From Phaeosaccion multiseriatum (lineage: Eukaryota; Protista; Ochrophyta, other classes): a DNA stretch of 64,000 nucleotides. The DNA lies in NCBI GenBank assembly GCA_965112735.1, contig OZ218962.1:1116001-1180000 (forward strand), in the 5' to 3' direction. The notes below the pieces were generated by a model. That model saw only the letters and a program-made list of their open reading frames with translations. It did no database searches and had not been told where the DNA came from. The translations under genes and the position numbers were made by a program. Below, in pieces: positions 3,439 to 54,044 of the stretch; position 1 is the stretch's first letter; every line of letters begins with the position of its first letter.

Positions 3439-5613
3439 CCCCTCCTTGCTCCCCTCCCTCCCGCCGTCTCTCCCTCCTCCCCCTCCTCCCCCTCCTCCCC
3501 TCCCTCTCACCTTGGCCGCAAAGGAGGCCCAAATCATGCTGGACGTGGAGGAAAGAGCCTTGAACACCTTCAGCACATCAAAGTGGCCCTCACGATTGGT
3601 CTCCCCCGCCAGTTCCGTCAGCTTATCCAGCAACATTTCATCGATGATCTGCTGCTGTGCCGTGGTCATGCGCGACATGTGGAGTCGATGCGCATTCTTC
3701 TTAAGGTGTGCCTTGAGTTGGGCCCGATCTGCCTGCTCCAGAGACATCTTGCGCTTTGCACCACCACCACTACCACTACCACCGCTGCCACCGCCATTAG
3801 CCCCATTGTTGTTGTTGGCGCCGCCAGGGCCCATCTCGCGTCTACCCCCTCCACCGAGCACGGCTTGGGTGGGTGGTCCGGAAGCCGCGCGGAGGTCTTG
3901 CTGTTGTCGCTGCTTGCCCTCCTCGCTCGGGAAAGACTCCCCCTGACCGTACCGCTTGTTCGGGGATGGTACCACTGCAATGCCCTGCTCGTCGAGGTTG
4001 CGCTCGCCGGTGTCCAGCCAATAGGCGAACTCGTCAAAGTCAAGCTGAGGGGGGAGGGAAAGGGGTGGTAGGGTATGTGCACGAGCGAGCCGCGAGGGAT
4101 AAGATGATATCATCCATCGACTTGGACTTGGAGAGGACAAAGGGGGGGGACGGGGGCGATAACTGGAAGCGTATTCTAAAAAGTGACAAGTGGCTGCACT
4201 CGAACGTGTCTCTCTGCTCCTCAAAGTCAGTCAAGCGTCCTCAGTCGTCCCCCGTCCCTGCGCCTTCCTTCCTCCCTCCCTCCCTCTCTTCCTTGGGTCT
4301 CAAGGTGGCCCAACTGTCACCGAGTGACCCGTTTCATTCGCGCAAGATGGGGGTGGGGATTTAAGGATTGCCTCCTGGACTCCCAAACTCCTCCACTTGT
4401 ACTTCCTCTCCCACTACACCCCCACCAAACCAAAGCAAACCTCCACACGCACGCACACACACACACACACACAACGCCACAACCCACCTGCCATGTGCGC
4501 GGTTCCGAGTCGAAGAGGTCGAAAGTGGCCTTAATGAGTGATTTGGGCATGAGTTTGCCAAAGCCCGCATCCGCCAACCCGCTCTTAAACTCGTTGAGCG
4601 AGAGAACGTGGCCTTGACCCTTGTGTATGTGTCGGAAGGCCCGGGCGATGAGCTCCTTTGAGCCAGAGCCAGGGGGCAGGGGGGCAAGGAACTTTTTCCG
4701 CAGGTAGTCCCCCAAGAGCTTGGTGTTGCTGTTGTTGCGACTCACCTGGGGGGGGGGGGGGCGGGGGCAAATTGCAAGAAGATAAGGGCATTGTTTGGAT
4801 GATACATACACAGATAGACAGGAATTCCAGGACCTCCCTCCCCCTCCTGCCCCAGAGTGCGCGAGAACTTCGCGAAACCGACTTCGTCTTTGTTTGCCAA
4901 ACAGTGGAAGCGGTAAGGACTAGCAGTACTCGCTTGAGTGGAGCGACAGGGCACCACCCATTCGTATATGCACACAGGCGTCACCGTTCGTCGTAGAGTG
5001 ATGAGAGAGGTGTCCAGACTGACTTGCACCTCGCTTCTCGCAGCTGTACACATTGCTGCTCCCTTGAGTTGCAGTCCACGAATGCTTTTGCCTGGCGTTG
5101 TCCTGTCCTTCCCTCTTCTGTTTAGTCACTGTGTCCTACCCTTCGTCCTTCCACCATCCCCTTTGCCTCTCGGGTCTCTCGGAGCAGGCACACCCCAAGG
5201 CCCCATGTATGAGCTTCCACCACTTGCCTCTCTCCCCCACCTCTCTACTCCTCCACCTCCCTTTACCAGATCTGCAGGCGTCTCTCGTTCTTCTCCCCCC
5301 CCCCCCCCTTCTCTCTTTACTGAAGGGCACGTACCGAATCTGACGAGGACGCAGAGCTTCCTGTTTCTGGACGTGATGCGCTGTGCTGCTGTATGTCCTG
5401 GAGTGATGGCAGATCAATTGGTCCTGCTGCCGCCAGCGACACCGGCCCACTGCCTCCTCCCCCTCCCCCTAAACTCCTCCTTCCCCTCGAACTCGTCATG
5501 GCCGCCCCTGCGGTCGACGGTCGACCCGAAGACAGGCTTGTTGATCTCGCTGTGAGAGGTGGAGGTGTGCCCTTCACCATCAGAGGGCCCACCTTCATGT
5601 CGGAAAGCCCCAT
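1..5613 (-). CDS. Multi-EF-hand calcium-binding protein (multi-exon, 3' end runs off the window)
   Basis: Spliced exons encode EF-hand loops [13 protein letters not shown] (~3135-3322), [13 protein letters not shown] (~1657-2072), [13 protein letters not shown] (~647-784) and [18 protein letters not shown] (4488-4746 joined to 3510-4044). GT-AG junctions. ATG at 5613 has an in-frame upstream TAG. Exons between ~4750 and 5330 are uncertain. Confidence 0.8.
801..1210. repeat. (GGTA)n tetranucleotide microsatellite, intronic
   Basis: About 400 bp of near-perfect GGTA units; reads (CCTA)n on the gene strand just before an acceptor. Confidence 0.95.
1285..1600. repeat. ~26-bp minisatellite (GGTATGGGGGTAGGCAGAGGCATACG)n, intronic
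   Basis: About a dozen diverged tandem copies are visible. Confidence 0.9.
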
Positions 5614-38754: not shown

Positions 38755-41294
38755 CTAAACCTTCGGGATGGCCCCATTCACAAACACCCCTTTGGCTACA
38801 CCCAGCTTGCCCGTCGTCCAAAAGAAGGTGTCCCTGACCCAGCCCCCCAACGCCGTCGGAGCAGCCTCGAGGTTACCAATGAGCAAACTCTGCAACAATA
38901 GCTGCACCACAACGGGCTTGCGTGCCCTCTCATAGCTCTTCACGGCACTCGCCAGTGACTTCTCCTCGCCGGAGTTAAGCCTCGCCAGCCGCTCGGCAAG
39001 GCAGTAGCCATCCTGGACAGCCTGAGGGTGGGTGCGTGAGCGGAATGGGTGCACGGGTGGGTGGGTGCGGTGGGTGGCGCATCCTTTAATTTCAGTTCCA
39101 GTTTCAGAAACAAGATTGACCAGCCCTAACCCGTCTAGCATCCATCCATCCATCCGTCCGTCCATCCACTGCCATCCATCCATGCGTATAACCTACCCTA
39201 CCCTACCCTACCTGGTTGACTCCCTGTCCCAGGAAGGGTGGCATGGCATGAGCAGCATCTCCGAGCAGCACGACTTTGCTGTCCTTGGAGGCCCACGGCA
39301 CCAGTGGGTTACGGTAATAAACACCTGAGTTAGGTTTAGAGGCAAACGGTTCGGGTGAGGGGTGAGGGGTGAGGCGTGAGGCGTGAGGGGTGAGGAGGGA
39401 GGGGTGAGTGGTGAGGACGAGGTAAGGCGTGAGGGTGATGGTGAGGCCGAGAGTATTGTATACAGTTGGGAGGGGGAAGGGCGGAGGGTGATACGCACCA
39501 ACGTCGAAGAAGCGTTGGCAGCCATCGGCCAGACGCATCATCTCTGGGGGGAAATTTGCCTTCTTGAAACTCGCGATGATGTCAGACCTTATCATGTAAA
39601 AAAGGGAGAGGGAGGGACGGAGGAAGAGAGGGAGGGAGGGAGGGATGGAGGGAGGGAGGGAGGGAGGGAGGGAGGGGGTTAAGGGTGAAGGGAGAGAGTC
39701 AGACCCTGACGACATCCTCTGTCCTGTCCTTCTTATTGATTGCCACCATCCTTCCATCCCCCCTCCCTTGACACCCTCTCTCATCCATCCCCATGCCCAA
39801 CACTCACTTTACCGTCTCCGTGTCCGCCTTCTTCCAGCCCTCATTCTCGTCAAGCTTCTCGTTGGGTCCGGCCCTAGTAACCGCCGCCACCATCGCACTC
39901 TCCTTGCCCTTGCTCTTGCCCCCTGGCCCCCCTCCATACGACGCGGAGAGGGCATAGAAATCCACCCCCATCCACTGATGAATCTCATTATCGCAGCCCT
40001 CCGGTCGGAGGTTGGCCGGCCCGACCCCAAATCGGACCCGGATACCGGCCGAGATCCTCTGCGGTAGCTTTGTGCCTCTCGACTCGGCCACCGCGCCCCC
40101 TACCACGGAGTTGATGCCGTCGGCCCCGACCACAAGGTCGAAGGGCCCCTCAAGCTTCGTGGAGCCCTCGAACTGCAGGCAGGGGCGACCTCTGGCCTCG
40201 GGATCGGAGTCTGTGTCAATTCCCACGAGCTTCTTGTTGAACTTGAGGCTGCCTCGAGGGAGCTTGCGTGCGAGGAGCTGGAGGAAGCTGTCTCGCATGA
40301 TGGTCAGCACGAGAGTGGTCCCTTGTTGATTCATTTTGGTGGGGTGGGGGTGGGGGTTTGGGGGGGAGGGAGAGGGAAAGGACGATACAACTTTGTAAAT
40401 TAAGAAAATTATGTTTAAGTGTATTGCAGCGGTGAATGGGGCTAGCATGTATTCGCCTTCAAGAGGCAAGGCAACATTGATGGGAATGACTGGTCGCCAA
40501 CAGATCTCTGGCCTTCGTCCCTGTGTTGGGGTCTAGACTAATTTGATCCCCGCAACCCTGACCTTTGGGTGCTTCGCAGCAAATTAAAGTATCCGGCAGC
40601 TTCACCACCCCACTCACCTTCGTAGGAGAGCGCTTCCTTCGCCTTTGGGTTGGCCCCGATGGCTTGAGGCACATCAATGTCGAGCAAGGGTGTTCCATCC
40701 ACTTTTCGAGAGCGAATACGCTGCACTGCTCGCCACAGTGACGCCATGAGTAAGCCACAGGGGCACGATGATTTGAAGGCCATACAATTATCAGGACACG
40801 ATGAGCAGAGTTGAGGACACAGGAATGACGTCCTGTTCCTCCTCCCTCCCTCTCTCACACACTTTCTCTCCCCCTCTCTCCCTCTCTCTCCCTCCCTCTC
40901 TCTCTCACACGCACACACCTGCATTTCCCGCCTTGAGGATATCTGGCCCCAACCCCATCTTGGCACAGATTGCGGCAGCGCCGTTGATCTGCACACCTCC
41001 CCCTAGGCCAGCCTTTATCTGACCAAAGCGATCGTACACTGTGACTTGCTGCACTCCCGTGGGCATCTGCATCAGCGCGTTGGCCAGGGCTAGACCGCCA
41101 CTGCCCGCTCCAATGATTGCAACCTTCTTGATATCGCTCTTGCCTGCGCTGTCGCCTTTCCTCGAGGTGGACACAGCCATGGACATTCCACCGCCAGTGA
41201 AGGCCTGGCAGCCGCTGAGAGAGTTAACCACAAGGAGGGTAGAGAGCGAGAGCAGGGGAAGCCCTCGCGACCGTCTAGAGTCTCTGTGACCCAT
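38755..41294 (-). CDS. FAD-dependent monooxygenase (zeaxanthin epoxidase/salicylate hydroxylase-like fold), probably plastid-targeted, 6 exons
   Basis: Rossmann motif KVAIIGAGSGGLALA, plus DLVVGADGINS and VVLLGDAAHAMPPFLGQG. Hydrophobic leader ending SGCQA-F resembles the ASAFAP cleavage motif. Confidence 0.9.
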
Positions 41295-41732
41295 CTTTCT
41301 TAGAGAAAACTACGGAATGTGAAGAGCGAGAATCCCAGCCCAGGCTGAGTCACGGTTGGGAAGTTGGTGATACAGCGTCACAGGCTGGCAAAAAACGCCT
41401 CCTACCGACTCGGGGGGCACGCGAAAAACATACATGCATATTGTATATATACATAGGTGTGAAGTGAAGGTGAAGGGAGAATTCGAGAATTCACACGAAG
41501 CGGCACGATGAGAGCACCGGTTTCCCGACATGCTGATGCCACTCCCTGACTCCCCCCTGCTCTCTCCAAGAATACCTTGGTTGCCATCTCCTCCTCCTCC
41601 CCCACACACACCTCCCGCGCCCTCCCCCCTCCCCGCTCCTGCTCCTCACTCCGTTGCCTCTCGAGTGAGTCGATACCACCAACTCTCCCAGCACCGACAC
41701 CTACCATCGTCTCTTATATATATATATATATT

Positions 41733-42647
41733 TCACAGGGGGCACAAAGGAGTCTTTAAAGGTCTTTAAAGGTTCTGGGCCTGAACCTTTGTGCATGAAC
41801 AAAGGGTTTAAAGGTTTTAGATGAAAAGCCGAAAACGTTAGTAAACGGTTTAAAGGTTTTGGGGCCTGAACCTTTGTGCATGAACAAAGGGTTTAAAGGT
41901 GTTTGGGGAAAAGCCGAAATCGTTAGTAAAGGGTTTAAAGGTTTTGGGCCTGAACCTTTGTGCATGAACAAAGGGTTTAAAGGTTTTAGAGGAAAAGCCG
42001 AAAACGTTAGGAAAGGGTTTAAAGGAATGGGCCACATTCCTTTAAAGGTGACTGCATCTTTGACAGCCTCAGGGACGGAGTCGCTAAAAGTTAAATTCCG
42101 TATAGTTGGTGGTGCGGCTGGGGCTGCTGCTGCTGCTGCTGCTGGTGCTACTGCGGGTGCCGGTGCTGGTGCTACTGCTGCTGCTGGTGCTGGTGCCGCT
42201 GCTGCTCCTCCGTCAGCTTCCATCCCGTTGTGAACCAAGCACCCTTTACCCTTTGTGCAGGATGTGTGTATGTGGTAGGATGTGTGGATTTGTGGATGTG
42301 AGGATGTGTGGAGGAGACAAGGCGTATAAACTCTAATGGGCAAAGGAAAAGGGTTTAAAGGTTTTAGGGAAAAAGCCGAAAACGTTAGTAAAGGGTTTAA
42401 AGGTTTTGGGCCTGAACCTTTGTGCATGAACAAAGGGTTTAAAGGTTTTAGAGGAAAAGCCGAAATCGTTAGTAAAGGGTTTAAAGGTTCTGGGCCTGAA
42501 ACCTTTGTGCATGAACAAAGGGTTTAAAGGTTTTAGAGGAAAAGCCGAAATCGTTAGTAAAGGGTTTAAAGGTGCCCGAGAGCACTCCTTTGTCAAAGGA
42601 ATTAGCACAAATCCTTTGTAAAACCTTTACCTTTGTACCCCCTGTGA
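41733..42647. mobile_element. 915-bp non-autonomous TIR DNA transposon with internal tandem arrays
   Basis: 18-bp TIR TCACAGGGGG(C/T)ACAAAGG with 1 mismatch; flanking 6-bp direct repeat TATATT (41727-41732 and 42648-42653); AT-rich relative to host. Confidence 0.85.
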
Positions 42648-44077
42648 TATATTTCCTCAAGCAATCCCCATCCGCCCCCCCCCCCCTCCCCCCGTGGGCA
42701 CACACACATACGTAATTCTTTGGTTGATACCTTTAAGTCCTACTTATCCTCCCGTGTCCGCCCCACTCCCTACTCCCTCTTGTCACTGCATTATACTCTC
42801 CCTCTTGTGCACTTACTTTATTCTATTTCCCCCCCTCCCCCCCGCTCTCTTCTCCTTCATAACACAAAACTCCTTTGCCTATGCTCACAGCACTTACCAT
42901 CGCCCTGATTTTTGACACGCAACAGATCACCGAGCCTTCAGTGACAAAAGAGGAAGCAAAACTCTTTCCAAGTTCCCGCAGCGGTTTCCGTGCGCAAATG
43001 AAGCGCTGATTGGCAACGATGCTACTGCAGGCGACAGGCTCTAGCCCGTGCTCCCAGTGCCGAAAATAAGCCGTGAGGACCGAAGAAGCAGGGGCATCGA
43101 GCGCAGTAAAAAGGCGAGCGTGACAGAGGGCATCCGAGTGGTACAAGCCCCACCCCCACCCCCCTTCCGCGCAAACAAACCACTAACCTGATGTCGAGGT
43201 GTACAGAACGTTCCGCCAAATCATTCACACTGATTCCTATGATGGAACCCTCTTCCTCCTCGTCCTCCTCCTCCTCCTGCTCCTGCTCTTGCTCCTCGTC
43301 CTCGTCGTCCTCCTGCTCCTCGGTGTCCCTCCTCCAACTGCAGTTGCTGCTGCTGCTCCTGCTGCGCCTTCTGCCGGGGCCAGAAGGACGGCGGAGCGAC
43401 CCACCCAAACACGGTCCAATACAGGGCAAGCGTTTTGGTGTGCCTCGCTCCCGCGGAGGCCGCCTGGGCACTATGAGGTCGTGGTCGAGCAGCGTCCCGC
43501 TCGCGCCCGTCAGGGCAGCACACATCTCCATATACTCCAGTGTATACAGCAAACGACCGCCAAGCGAGAGGTGAGCAGCAACCCCAACCGCATTTTCAGT
43601 AGGAAGACCCTCAGCGGCTCCACCAAAGGATCGAGCAGGAAAGCGTCGACGCTCTGTTCCTCGCTCTTCTCCCTCCTAGCCCACTGCTGACTGAGGCTCT
43701 GATGAGCGTGAAATCGAGGCCCCGCGCCTCCGTGAGAGAGAGGCCCACGCAGAGGACTCGGTCCTTGCTCTCCCCCCGAAATCGCTGCGCAAAAGCGCCC
43801 GTCACCGCAGCATCAACGAGGGCAGGCACACCGAAAGTGAGTGCTCGAATGCTCCGATTGCCTGTGATCCTTCGACGCCCTCCACGTGTTGTAAACACCT
43901 ACGACCCCCGGGGGGATTCTCACCAAGAGTCCATGCAGAGAAGGAGGAGAAAAAGAGTGGTCTCGCAGCGTCTGCTGTAAGGGCACGCTGCTGCCGGTGA
44001 GGCTTTCTGGGTTGTAAAGGTCGTCGGGGAAGATCCAATTGTGGCAAAAAGGGGGGAGTGGAAGGTGGAATTACGGA

Positions 44078-47000
44078 ATGGCGATGGCAAAGGCGGCAGC
44101 GAAGAGCAAGAAACGAAGCAGGGATTATAGAGAGCTGGGGGGGGCACTCCACTGTGTCACGATGGACGAGAGCGGAATTCCGGGGCACGCACTTATGCCA
44201 GTCGACAATTCTGGGGAGCCCCGGTCTCTTTTTCCGTCACGCAATGCTGGAGGAGGGAGTAGTAGAAGTGGTGCTGATCAGCAGCAGCATGTGGAGGATG
44301 GCGGGGCAGAGGAAGAGGAAGCGGAGGAGGACGACGAAGGTGAAGGGGAGGATGAGGAAGACGAGGATGAGCGAGCGGGAGGAGCAGCAGGGGGCGCAGG
44401 GGGGAAGGGGGTGAGACACGTGACTCCACCGCCGCCGCCAGCGCTGTCCGCAATCCCCAACGCACTTGCAGCTGCAGCCGCAGTGGAGGGGATGGCTACA
44501 ACTACAGATGCTGGGTCAGCGGCGTCAGCGGCGTCAGCGGGCGCATCGGGGAGTGCTGTGGTGGCGGCCCACATCGCAGCAACAGTCGCCAGAGCGAAAG
44601 CGCGTCGGAAGGCCAGCGACAGCGTCATCAGGGACTATGACCCGTGTGGGGCGAGCGTCAAGAGCAAGCTAGGCTTTGTGATGGAACCTGGGGGCGCTGG
44701 GAGAGCGGGGGGCAGTAGTAGCGGCAGTGCCATTGGAGGAGCAAGCAGCAGCGGAGGGGGGAAGCGACGAGCATGTGGAGGACTAATTGAAGACGGAGGA
44801 GGAGAAGGAGGAGGAGGAGGAGGAGGAGGAGGAGAAGGAGGAGGAAGTAGTGGAGGAGGAGGAGGAGGAGGAGGAGGAGGAGGAGGAAGTAGTGGAGGAG
44901 GAGGAGGAAGTAGTGGAGGAGGAGGAGGAGGAGGAGGAGGAGGAGGAGGAGGAGGAGGAGGGGGAGGGGGGGGAGGAGAGGAGGGAGGGGGAGGGGGAGG
45001 GAGTGGAGGAGGGGGGGGAGGAGAGGAAGCGGGAGGAGGGGGAGAAGCAGGAGGGGGAGGAGGAGGGGGGGGGGCGGGAGGAGGAGGAGGAGGAGGAGGA
45101 GGAGGAGGCCCGGCAGATGCGGCTGGGGGAAGCTCCGGCTGCAGCAGCAGCACGAGCAGCAGCAAGTCTCTGGCAGCTCCGTGGACCGTACAGGAGTTCT
45201 TCGCCCATCCTCGCCAGTATGATCCGTCTGCGAGCATCCTGCACCATCCCGTCAACTCGGAGGGAGACACCGCGCTCTATCTGGCGGCCAAGCAGGGCAT
45301 TATGGATGCGGTGGAGGTGCTGCTTGCCGTGCCTTGTACGCAGATCAATTGGCAGAACCATAAGGGAGTCACTGCCCTGAGCATCGCTGCGCACAAAGGA
45401 CGGGCCAATGTTGTGGGAGTGCTTATTGACGCGAATGCCGATGTCAATATTGAGAGCAACAATGGCTCGACGCCTCTGATTCAGGCCTCGCACTTTGGCC
45501 ATGCGGAGGTGGTGAAGCGGTTGGTCAAGGCAGGGGCATCTGTGGATAAGCCCAATAACAAGGGCACCACGGCTCTCATGAGAGCAACGCAGGTACGCCA
45601 GTTGTGAGTGAGATTAGATTAGAGCTTGCCAACTTTTGTATTGATGGGAGGAGGGCTCGACTATCCATCTATCTACGCCTGGCTTGGCATTTGGCGTTGC
45701 TATGCTCGTCCTTCAGCTGATAGTTGAGAGAGAGAGAGAGTAATGCGTGGTTTGGCTTGGCGCAGCACAGGACCCCACGCACCACACAATCGCCCACTCA
45801 CGCACGCACGCACTCCGCTTTCCCCTCTACGCTACCCTTCCCTCCACCCATCATGCACACCCTCTTCCAACACACTTCCCTTCTCCCTCCTCTTCCTTCC
45901 CACAGGAGGGGAATGGCACAGTCGTGAGGATACTCATCGGCCATGGGGCGAATGTGACGCGGCGCAACAACGAGTTGATGAATGCCCTCATGCTGGGCTC
46001 TCAGCGGGGGCACGGGGGTATCGTGCGAGAGCTAATCCAGCACAGCGCCGAGGTAGACGGGCAGACGGCTCAGGGGAGCACAGCGCTCATGCTGGCGTGC
46101 AAGAGGGGTCACACAGGTGGGTATAGATGCATTAGAAGGAGGGGTGGGCTTGGTTTTCCGCGGTTGTAGGTTTCAGGCTAGTGGACCTGCTGTTCCCTCA
46201 CTCTTTGTTTATTTTTGTGTGTTGTCCCTTTGCTTCTTGCTTTGCTTGGCCTTTTGCCTCTCGAACAGAGGTGGTGGAGGTGCTGCTGGCGGCGGGAGCC
46301 GAAATGAACATGAAGGATTCGAGGGGGCGTACTGCGAGAGACACGGCAAGCAGGAGGCACCACCCCAAGATACTCGCCCTGCTCCACCCGGGCAAGCAGA
46401 TGCGCCTGATGCAGGACGACGTACGCCAGCATAGAACCAACTTGCTCAACTGGCTCTACCAGCCCATGCAGCGCCCGAGGTGAGATGGGGATTATGGATC
46501 AGAGGCCATACGACCTGACGGTTCGATGCATTCGAATGTGCGGTGGGGAGGGAGGGAGGGAGGGAGGGACGGAGGGTGGGAAGAGAGAGTGAGAGAGATG
46601 GTTCTCTCTGCCTTTCTCTCTCTTCTCTCCTTCTCCCTCTCTCTGTGTGTGTTCTCTCCGTCCCTCTCGTTCTCTCTCTCTCACACACACGCCCCTCTCT
46701 CTCTTGTCTCTCTCTCCCTCTCTGCAGCGTGGACGGTATGTTCATGAGTCAGGGCTATTCCACCAGCGCTCTGGCCAAGGCGTTCCAACTTCCCCAGCCC
46801 CTGTTCGAGAGGGTGATTCTCTTCATGCCCCTGCCCAGGCTGTGGGAGAAGACGCTGTGCAAGTTGCGCAGGTGAGAGAGGGAGGGAAAGAAAGAAAGGG
46901 ACAGAGGGAGAGACACATATGTGTATATGTATATATATATATGTGTGTTTGTGTGTGAGCGTGTGTGTGCGCACGCAGTTGCGTGCATGCGTGCGCGTGT

Positions 47001-52870: not shown

Positions 52871-53367
52871 TCGGCCCCGTGCACGCCTAGCGGCCTAGGC
52901 CTATTTTGAAAAATTGCCCGGCCTAGCGAGGGCCGTAGGCTCTCGGCCTATTTATAGGCCGCCTAGGCGGCGGCCTAGGCGGGGCAGACGCCAACTAGGC
53001 GCAGGTCCAGGGCGGGAATATGCTCATATGCCCCTGCCTGGGCTGGCCCGGAACCCGCCCAAGTGTCGTCAGTTTTAAGCAAATGTATTGCATGGGATAA
53101 GTGAGGAGTAGCTAGACTTGGTTCGTGTTGTCTCTTTCCGCCTCGCTGGCCCTACGAGGAGTGCAGGCCTACAGGTGTGCTGCTACCCACTAGCTGGGCG
53201 GCACCACGCACGCGCCCACGGTCACTGGGAGGCTGCCTAGAGGCGGGCTAGAGGCTGCCTAGAGGCGGGCTATAGGCCGCCTAGGGCTGAAAAGTGAGCG
53301 GCCTAGAGCGGCCGGAGGCCGCCGGCCTAGGCCTAGAGCCTAGGCCGCTAGGCGTGCACGGGGCCGA
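52871..53367. mobile_element. 497-bp MITE
   Basis: Perfect 30-bp TIR TCGGCCCCGTGCACGCCTAGCGGCCTAGGC; 7-bp direct repeat TACAGGG on both flanks; many subterminal GGCCTAG motifs. Confidence 0.93.
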
Positions 53368-53508
53368 TACAGGGGGGAAAGGAGGGCATATAGGCCAACA
53401 ATATAACGTCTTATGTTAGGTGTGGCCCTCCCTTATCCCAATTATCCTTGTCCTGCGAGTAAGCCCAACCTATCCCCCCCCTACTAGACCCTACCCCCCA
53501 CCTTGTAA

Positions 53509-53662
53509 TCAACCCCTGATACACTATCCGCTATCCGCTATCGCTGGCGCCAGCCGGCACGTTATCCGCTATCGGCCGGCGCCAGCCGGTGCGCTATCCG
53601 CTATCGGCCGGCGGCCGATAGCGCGCTATCGAGAATGTGGGCGATAGTGTATCAGGGATTGA
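53509..53662. mobile_element. 154-bp MITE
   Basis: 20-bp TIR TCAA(C/T)CCCTGATACACTATC with 1 mismatch; 6-bp direct repeat TTGTAA (53503-53508 and 53663-53668); internal CTATCCGCTATC repeats. Confidence 0.88.
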
Positions 53663-53697
53663 TTGTAAGCATGCCCCAGCCAGTCCAGTGTCCAGTG

Positions 53698-54044
53698 TCG
53701 ACCCGATTCTCGGTAGAATGCTACCGGGCTGTAGCACGCCAGCAGCAGGTAGCAGCTAGCTCACGCCGGCGGTGGCAGCGGATGGGAGGGAGGGAGGGAG
53801 GGAGGGAGGGAGGGAGGGAGGGAGGGAGGGAGGGAGGGAGGGAGGGAGGGAGGGAGGGAGGGAGGGAGGGAGGGAATCGGTTCAAATTAAGGCGTCTTCG
53901 CGTATTGTCCCGTCGGCCGGTAGCAGGTCAAGGTCGGCTGACGCCGGCGGTAGCAGGTAGGACGTTGGTTGACGCCGGCGGTAGCAGGTAGGACGTTGGT
54001 TGACGCCGGCGGTAGCAGGTAGCAGGTAGCACGTCAGGGGTCGA
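53698..54044. mobile_element. 347-bp MITE-like element
   Basis: Termini TCGACCC...GGGGTCGA (7-bp perfect TIR, with TGCTACC/GGTAGCA inside both ends); 6-bp direct repeat CCAGTG (53692-53697 and 54045-54050); internal GACGCCGGCGGTAGCAGGT repeats. Confidence 0.72.

Follow-up and report, generated by a model that had tools for sequence, protein, structure and literature searches.

A very low-copy, probably hAT-like transposon in an algal genome, filled largely by phased arrays akin to its own termini

The window analyzed here is a 64-kb stretch of DNA (C13:1116001-1180000) from an assembly of 67.1 Mb in 22 contigs. At positions 41734-42646, the window carries an element of 913 bp whose ends are terminal inverted repeats of 17 bp (TIRs; CACAGGGGGYACAAAGG). 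As had been surmised from a first reading of the sequence, the element lies between two divergent genes; these are, according to predicted gene models, a minus-strand FAD/NAD-binding monooxygenase on the left and a plus-strand ankyrin gene on the right (Table 1). On these models, it probably occupies the intergenic stretch between the divergent pair, some 440 bp away from where the left gene is likely to start (N-terminus at ~41294). The termini of the element read CACAGGGGG...CCCCCTGTG. The TIRs are complementary at 16 of their 17 positions (one mismatch), have no further match within the 64-kb window and recur exactly in a second copy of the element on contig 14. Neither copy, at 913 and 451 bp, has coding capacity for a transposase, and an ORF that crosses the element is devoid of Pfam domains. 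A search of Rfam gave nothing beyond one sub-threshold chance match.

Table 1. Features of the element and of the adjoining genes (window positions)
Feature	Position	Strand	Remark
FAD_binding_3	39203-39784	-	ORF left of element
NAD_binding_8, weak N-terminal motif	40905-41294	-	ORF left of element
Left target-site duplication ATATATTT	41726-41733	.	identical to 42647-42654; edge of (TA)n tract
Left terminal inverted repeat CACAGGGGGCACAAAGG	41734-41750	+	
Array 1, 3.2 copies of 84-bp unit, cores 1-6	41757-42025	+	
Array 1 cores (start positions)	41801, 41843 (AAACGG variant), 41886, 41928, 41970, 42012	+	
Central non-repeat segment, 322 bp	42026-42347	.	missing from contig-14 copy
Array 2, 2.7 copies of 85-bp unit, cores 7-12	42348-42573	+	
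Right subterminal region	42574-42629	+	with TIR: four CCTTT(GT) and one AAAGG
Right terminal inverted repeat CACAGGGGGTACAAAGG on minus strand	42630-42646	-	
Right target-site duplication ATATATTT	42647-42654	.	
Ankyrin repeats	44039-45607	+	ORF right of element

A perfect 8-bp direct repeat, ATATATTT, which went unnoticed in the earlier note, abuts both termini. The second copy (C14:1434457-1434907) is 451 bp long, has the same TIRs and is framed by a perfect 8-bp duplication of its own, CAAATTTG. The bases adjoining the TIRs are T/A in the window and G/C on contig 14; since they differ between the copies, these bases outside CACAG...CTGTG are flanking DNA, and the borders are thereby fixed. 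The TIR element described in the earlier note (41733-42647) is real, but each of its borders was drawn one base too wide. Termini of the type TC...GA with target-site duplications (TSDs) of 6-7 bp were ruled out, since the contig-14 copy has G...C at these positions and only an 8-bp TSD suits both copies. A nested or tandem double element was ruled out by the absence of internal TIRs, and a segmental duplication by the lack of relationship between the flanks at the two loci, together with the difference between the TSDs. Different 8-bp duplications at the two insertions leave transposition as the only explanation. It is thus a genuine non-autonomous DNA transposon that moved recently and has a very low copy number.

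Genome-wide, the exact core sequence of its internal arrays (AAAGGGTTTAAAGG; see below) occurs 19 times and at two loci only, 11 times in the window element and 8 times at C14:1434524-1434833. BLAST with array 2 alone returned just these two loci, and searches with each terminus returned the two loci plus one diverged right end. Two solo right ends, both diverged, are found at C11:2831270-2831286, which reads ..TTCCTTTCCTTTGTACCCCCCGTG, and at C14:2413383-2413450, which is ~81% identical over 67 bp to the right subterminal region; no left partner was found for either within 1.5 kb. These solo ends indicate that the family is older than its two intact copies. The family's total in 67 Mb, two intact copies plus two degraded ends, falls short of the high copy number of a classical MITE and, copy number being low, the term "low-copy non-autonomous element" is preferred to MITE in its strict sense. 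Scans of metagenomes, viruses and prokaryote genomes for relatives were empty, the single metagenome match (Ga0247610_10000109) having been ruled out as an unrelated (AAAGGGTTT)n microsatellite. That sequence contains, at positions 4925-5055, the 9-bp (AAAGGGTTT)n microsatellite and then tandem repeats of 34 bp, and its match to the two-core pattern is a chance one.

The surroundings of the solo end at C14:2413450 merit a brief description. This end sits among Copia (RVT_2) fragments, one of which, nearby, is interrupted by a long perfect palindrome, and beside an abundant repeat of ~95 bp (C14:2413164-2413258). The ~95-bp segment occurs at more than 40 genomic places with 95-99% identity, often as pairs 1.3-1.5 kb apart, suggesting that it represents the termini of an abundant short transposable element.

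The interior of the window element is dominated by two arrays of the core AAAGGGTTTAAAGG. Allowing for at most one mismatch, 12 matches to this core were found in the 64-kb window (11 exact and one AAACGG variant), all of them on the plus strand inside 41801-42572, against a chance expectation from shuffles of 0.03. The earlier note had described two same-orientation arrays of about six cores each, phased every 42 bp with two strictly alternating spacers, A and B, in an 84-bp higher-order unit. This description holds: each array contains six cores, with start-to-start distances of 42, 43, 42, 42 and 42 bp in array 1 and 42, 42, 42, 43 and 42 bp in array 2. Two types of spacer, GGGCCTGAACCTTTGTGCATGAAC and AGAGGAAAAGCCGAAA(A/T)CGTTAGT, follow one another in the order B,A,B,A,B in both arrays without exception, with part of an A unit ahead of core 1. 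Tandem Repeats Finder likewise favored a unit of 84/85 bp (90-96% matches) over a period of 42 bp (60-62%). Only the spacer sequences quoted at the time need amendment; the A spacer is found exactly as given at cores 4 and 8, whereas the B spacer is nowhere exact and departs from the actual ones by 1-2 mismatches.

The arrays are related in sequence to the ends of the element. The left end can be written as CACAGGGGG-CACAAAGG-AGTC-TTTAAAGG-TC-TTTAAAGG, leading directly into array 1 at element base 24, and the unit junction within the arrays as AACAAAGG-G-TTTAAAGG; the left-end sequence CACAAAGGAGTCTTTAAAGGTCTTTAAAGG loosely copies the unit junction AACAAAGGGTTTAAAGG. This match between left end and unit junction implies that the core reiterates TIR-inner and subterminal sequence. 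Each 42-bp half-unit bears ACAAAGG/AAAGG..TTTAAAGG, a motif found directly after the left TIR tip. Every A spacer, that is, every second spacer, adds CCTTTGTGC-ATGA-ACAAAGG, an inverted pair of the TIR-inner heptamer in which CCTTTGTGC exactly complements the left TIR over its inner 9 bases. Motif densities reflect this kinship. AAAGG occurs 31.8 times per kb in the element versus 0.94 in the rest of the window, CCTTTGT 9.9 versus 0.17, and ACAAAGG 6.6 versus 0.08; altogether, the AAAGG/CCTTT(GT) motifs common to the TIR are 9-80-fold enriched relative to the rest of the window. The four CCTTT(GT) motifs in the right 74 bp are oppositely oriented, fitting an inverted end. The architecture of the arrays is that of subterminal repeats.

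A quite different significance had at first been attached to the core, which includes GGGTTTA, a permutation of the TTTAGGG telomere unit. On a telomere-related proposal, the arrays would form a telobox platform for a host Myb or telomere protein, delivered by a transposon into a bidirectional promoter, where it would have a regulatory or architectural part to play. The position of the element between divergently oriented genes and the moderate curvature predicted for its arrays (see below) speak for this proposal, and GGGTTTA is just one T longer than the GGGTTA of the host. Against it, four of six contig starts are pure (CCCTAA)n, which identifies TTAGGG as the host telomere repeat; of the other two, contig 2 opens with CCCTAA repeats intermingled with CCCTGG/CCTGG variants and contig 3 with a GGGA-rich array from which the telomere repeat is absent. 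No match to (TTTAGGG)x4 was obtained genome-wide, and neither GGGTTA nor TAACCC occurs in the element. The subtelomeric location that a telomeric connection might predict is not seen either: cores are present at two loci, both internal to their chromosomes (C13 ~1.16 Mb and C14 ~1.43 Mb, in contigs of ~3.33 Mb) and more than 1 Mb from contig ends, so that the search for subtelomeric enrichment suggested in the earlier note turned out negative. Scanned ORFs of at least 100 aa at 54-59 kb contain no Myb domain. GGGTTTA is more simply accounted for as part of the AAAGG-N4-AAAGG repeat that the arrays share with the TIR-proximal sequence. Private short-motif arrays are also present in two other elements of the window (see below), which points to a feature of transposons, not one related to telomeres. 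Held against the refuting condition of the earlier note, an unrelated host telomere motif, the string in the core is one base away from the host repeat and is not that repeat. We regard the resemblance to telomeres as a coincidence, and the telobox proposal as scarcely credible. When set beside interstitial telomere-like repeats or the plant telobox (AAACCCTA), the element shows a sole likeness, the seven letters GGGTTTA; unlike those sequences, it has no tandem TTTAGGG, exists as two transposon copies only and is not subtelomeric.

A genome-wide survey of copy number and array length, which had been recommended as a check, produced two loci, at which the element differs in length by 462 bp. 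Removal of exactly 462 bp from the window copy yields the contig-14 copy, with 3 substitutions in 451 bp. The cut can be placed anywhere in 41886-41901, inside core 3 or core 7, which lie exactly 462 bp apart; in the short copy, units 1-2 hence continue in register into units 7-12. It lacks units 3-6 and the 322-bp central segment and has kept 8 cores. Most simply, it would have come about when slippage, or unequal or abortive gap repair, deleted DNA in register between the two direct arrays, with transposition either coming afterwards or accompanying the deletion. Internal deletions of this kind are the source of short Ac and P derivatives. The reverse history, in which an ancestor with a single array gained units and filler DNA, is also conceivable.

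The unique parts of the central segment (42026-42122 and 42207-42347) match only themselves genome-wide. The segment also includes, at 42107-42206, a stretch of (GCT)n microsatellite and, at 42260-42312, repeats of GGATGTGT. The (GCT/CAG)n stretch matches scores of genomic loci, which are CAG microsatellites, at 75-88% identity. With both unique halves lacking another genomic match and any Pfam match, no captured gene fragment was found in the center. A perfect 9-bp hairpin, AAAGGAATG-GGCCA-CATTCCTTT (42021-42043), lies where array 1 meets the central segment, and a 7-bp direct repeat, AATGGGC, brackets the segment (42026-42032 and 42335-42341). Hairpin and direct repeat may mark the site of a past repair or filler-DNA event.

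The regular phasing of the arrays had also suggested that they might be bent. This was evaluated with a dinucleotide wedge model of our own, with parameters after Bolshoy et al. 1991; its output is indicative only. In control runs of the model, phased A6 tracts and (A4T4) were curved and (T4A4) and out-of-phase tracts were straight. The predicted ratio of end-to-end to contour length was 0.80 and 0.73 for the two arrays, as compared to 0.94 +/- 0.04 for random 226-bp pieces of the window (at most 1% of which were as curved as the arrays), 0.92 +/- 0.06 for shuffled arrays (1-4% as curved) and 0.37-0.45 for classic A-tract DNA. In synthetic arrays made of the two half-units, the modeled curvature peaked at a period of exactly 42 bp. 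It is thus plausible, as far as the model goes, that the arrays are intrinsically curved with a moderate amplitude. The idea of bent DNA survives to this extent, with its peak at the 42-bp period. The T3A3 step is a classic non-bending arrangement, and because the core carries it, the predicted bend would stem from the unit as a whole.

As to the superfamily, a hAT-like affiliation fits best, going by the 8-bp TSD and the short TIR starting with CA. Both copies (ATATATTT, CAAATTTG) carry the 8-bp TSD required of a hAT element. The hAT consensus comprises a TIR tip (C/T)A(A/G)NG and a target preference nTnnnnAn. The tip of the present TIR, CACAG, departs from this consensus at position 3, and each TSD (n=2) matches one of the two preferred nTnnnnAn positions, on one strand. 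A genome-wide search for the hAT dimerization domain and for matches to the TIRs disclosed no autonomous partner; there is one Dimer_Tnp_hAT (PF05699) match, at C4:4842620, which is weak (33 bits), and no TIR match with up to 2 mismatches is found near it. That the genome holds just one weak match to the hAT dimerization domain, and that the TIR tip is not canonical, would suit a transposon of another superfamily making 8-bp duplications, either P/Galileo-like, a MULE or Merlin. TSDs of 8 bp are also made by P elements, and Galileo ends contain tandem repeats with secondary transposase sites (PMC4079207). Against such an origin, which we regard as rather unlikely, a 17-bp TIR starting with CA combined with an exact 8-bp TSD in both copies constitutes the commonest hAT signature. 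MULEs usually have TSDs of 9-10 bp and long TIRs, and Merlin TIRs are not known to start with CA.

In the hAT superfamily, the transposase recognizes phased subterminal repeats by means of its BED domain and leaves 8-bp TSDs; the repeats are asymmetric at the two ends and phase-sensitive (PMC10368747). In Tetris and Galileo, internal tandem repeats derive from TIR sequence and contain secondary transposase sites (PMC4079207). Transposons with amplified subterminal repeats that putatively bind transposase are in fact an already known pattern, exemplified by Ac/Ds, Hermes, Galileo and Tetris. The present element resembles maize Ac/Ds and Hermes (PMC10368747; PMC3260210) in having a short TIR starting with CA, an 8-bp TSD, many short subterminal motifs distributed asymmetrically by end, and internal-deletion derivatives that are still mobile. 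It differs from them in that a regular 84-bp tandem array fills most of the element, whereas theirs are irregularly scattered hexamers, and also in its CACAG tip, its two copies and the candidate status of its hAT assignment, no partner transposase having been found. With Drosophila Tetris and Galileo and the MITE-like "pearl" elements of bivalves (PMC4079207) it shares a non-coding body with TIRs, TSDs of 8-9 bp, few complete copies and internal tandem repeats that originated when a portion of the terminus was duplicated. In Tetris and Galileo, which are of the foldback type, long inverted arms contain the repeats; the present element has two direct arrays flanked by short TIRs, a unit of 84 bp (2 x 42) and no satellite-like expansion beyond its borders. 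The comparison with plasmid iterons made in the earlier note is apt as an analogy, not as membership: in both cases short sites are directly repeated and helically phased, and loading of multiple copies of one protein is proposed; however, iterons belong to bacterial replication origins beside a rep gene, and the sequence described here is a transposon of a eukaryote, complete with TIRs and TSD.

Taken together, we consider it fairly likely that the locus harbors a hAT-like non-autonomous cut-and-paste transposon whose interior is amplified TIR-proximal sequence and whose arrays are probably transposase sites. The anatomy, mobility and copy number of the element, the 462-bp deletion relationship and the kinship of its motifs with the TIR are established; its superfamily, transposase binding and any contribution of curvature are inferred. 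The tandem 84-bp units would have been amplified from sequence next to the element's own TIR. If other families are a guide, the arrays would most probably serve as reiterated subterminal binding sites for the mobilizing transposase, with the 42-bp period, equivalent to four helical turns, placing the sites on one face of the helix and a modest intrinsic bend possibly aiding the synapsis of the ends. The 451-bp copy would have originated as an in-register 462-bp deletion derivative, through slippage or unequal repair between the arrays, and would subsequently have transposed. A phased docking platform for transposase, albeit putative, is a reasonable proposition because the cores reiterate a TIR-proximal motif. 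Among the points against this explanation is the orientation of the arrays, which is the same for both, so that they do not make up a symmetric pair of end-binding regions.

The arrays might instead be a neutral minisatellite that grew, by replication slippage or unequal exchange, out of subterminal sequence in a MITE close to extinction, with phasing and bend as by-products that serve neither transposase nor host. A neutral expansion of this sort would be expected to look no different from what is seen. This alternative, which strikes us as less likely, would agree with the finding of two intact copies in 67 Mb, in that the arrays brought no amplification success, and with the lability of array length evident from the 462-bp in-register difference. 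Other MITE-like elements in the window hold private short-motif arrays too, and any tandem repeat with a period that is a multiple of 10.5 bp will sum small bends coherently. Nor can conservation of the 42-bp spacing be taken as independent evidence of constraint, as there are just two near-identical copies. On the other hand, the unit is not arbitrary: it is the TIR-inner heptamer that is reiterated, and in both orientations. It is the inner part of transposon ends that transposases usually recognize. Moreover, the shortened copy, with its 8 cores, still transposed and left a perfect TSD.

At the opposite extreme from neutrality, the phased 42-bp array could have been selected as a rigid, curved, one-faced ladder of sites for transposase or a host factor, carried into promoters, with the number of units tuning transposition or the expression of neighboring genes. 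We hold this to be quite improbable. If true, it would provide a tractable example of helical-phase-dependent assembly of a transpososome or enhanceosome in a stramenopile alga. Under the favored explanation, that of a hAT-like element with amplified terminal sequence, general understanding is unchanged, and the finding is of use for repeat annotation and, possibly, as a sign that a transposase was recently active in this organism. What is added to an algal genome is a DNA transposon family of low copy number with recent activity. The element offers a natural example of tandem repeats born from transposon ends and, owing to its clean anatomy, of short derivatives arising from repeat-bearing elements.

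Two further elements with private short-motif arrays are present in the window. One, at 52871-53367, is MITE-like and 497 bp long; its TIRs (TCGGCCCCGTGCACGCCTAGCGGCCTAGGC) are perfect over 30 bp, and its TSD, TACAGGG, measures 7 bp. It is full of GGCCTAG(G/A) motifs and unrelated in sequence to the element at 41734-42646. The other, at 53502-53669, lies 135 bp away from the first, is 168 bp long, has 27-bp TIRs (CTTGTAATCAACCCCTGATACACTATC) that are 89% complementary and contains internal CGCTATC(C/G) repeats with a period of 31-32. The stretch containing these elements may be an insertion hotspot. Beyond it are a long (GGGA)n microsatellite, at 53787-53876, and three 31-bp tandem units (GTTGGTTGACGCCGGCGGTAGCAGGTAGGAC), at 53933-54025.
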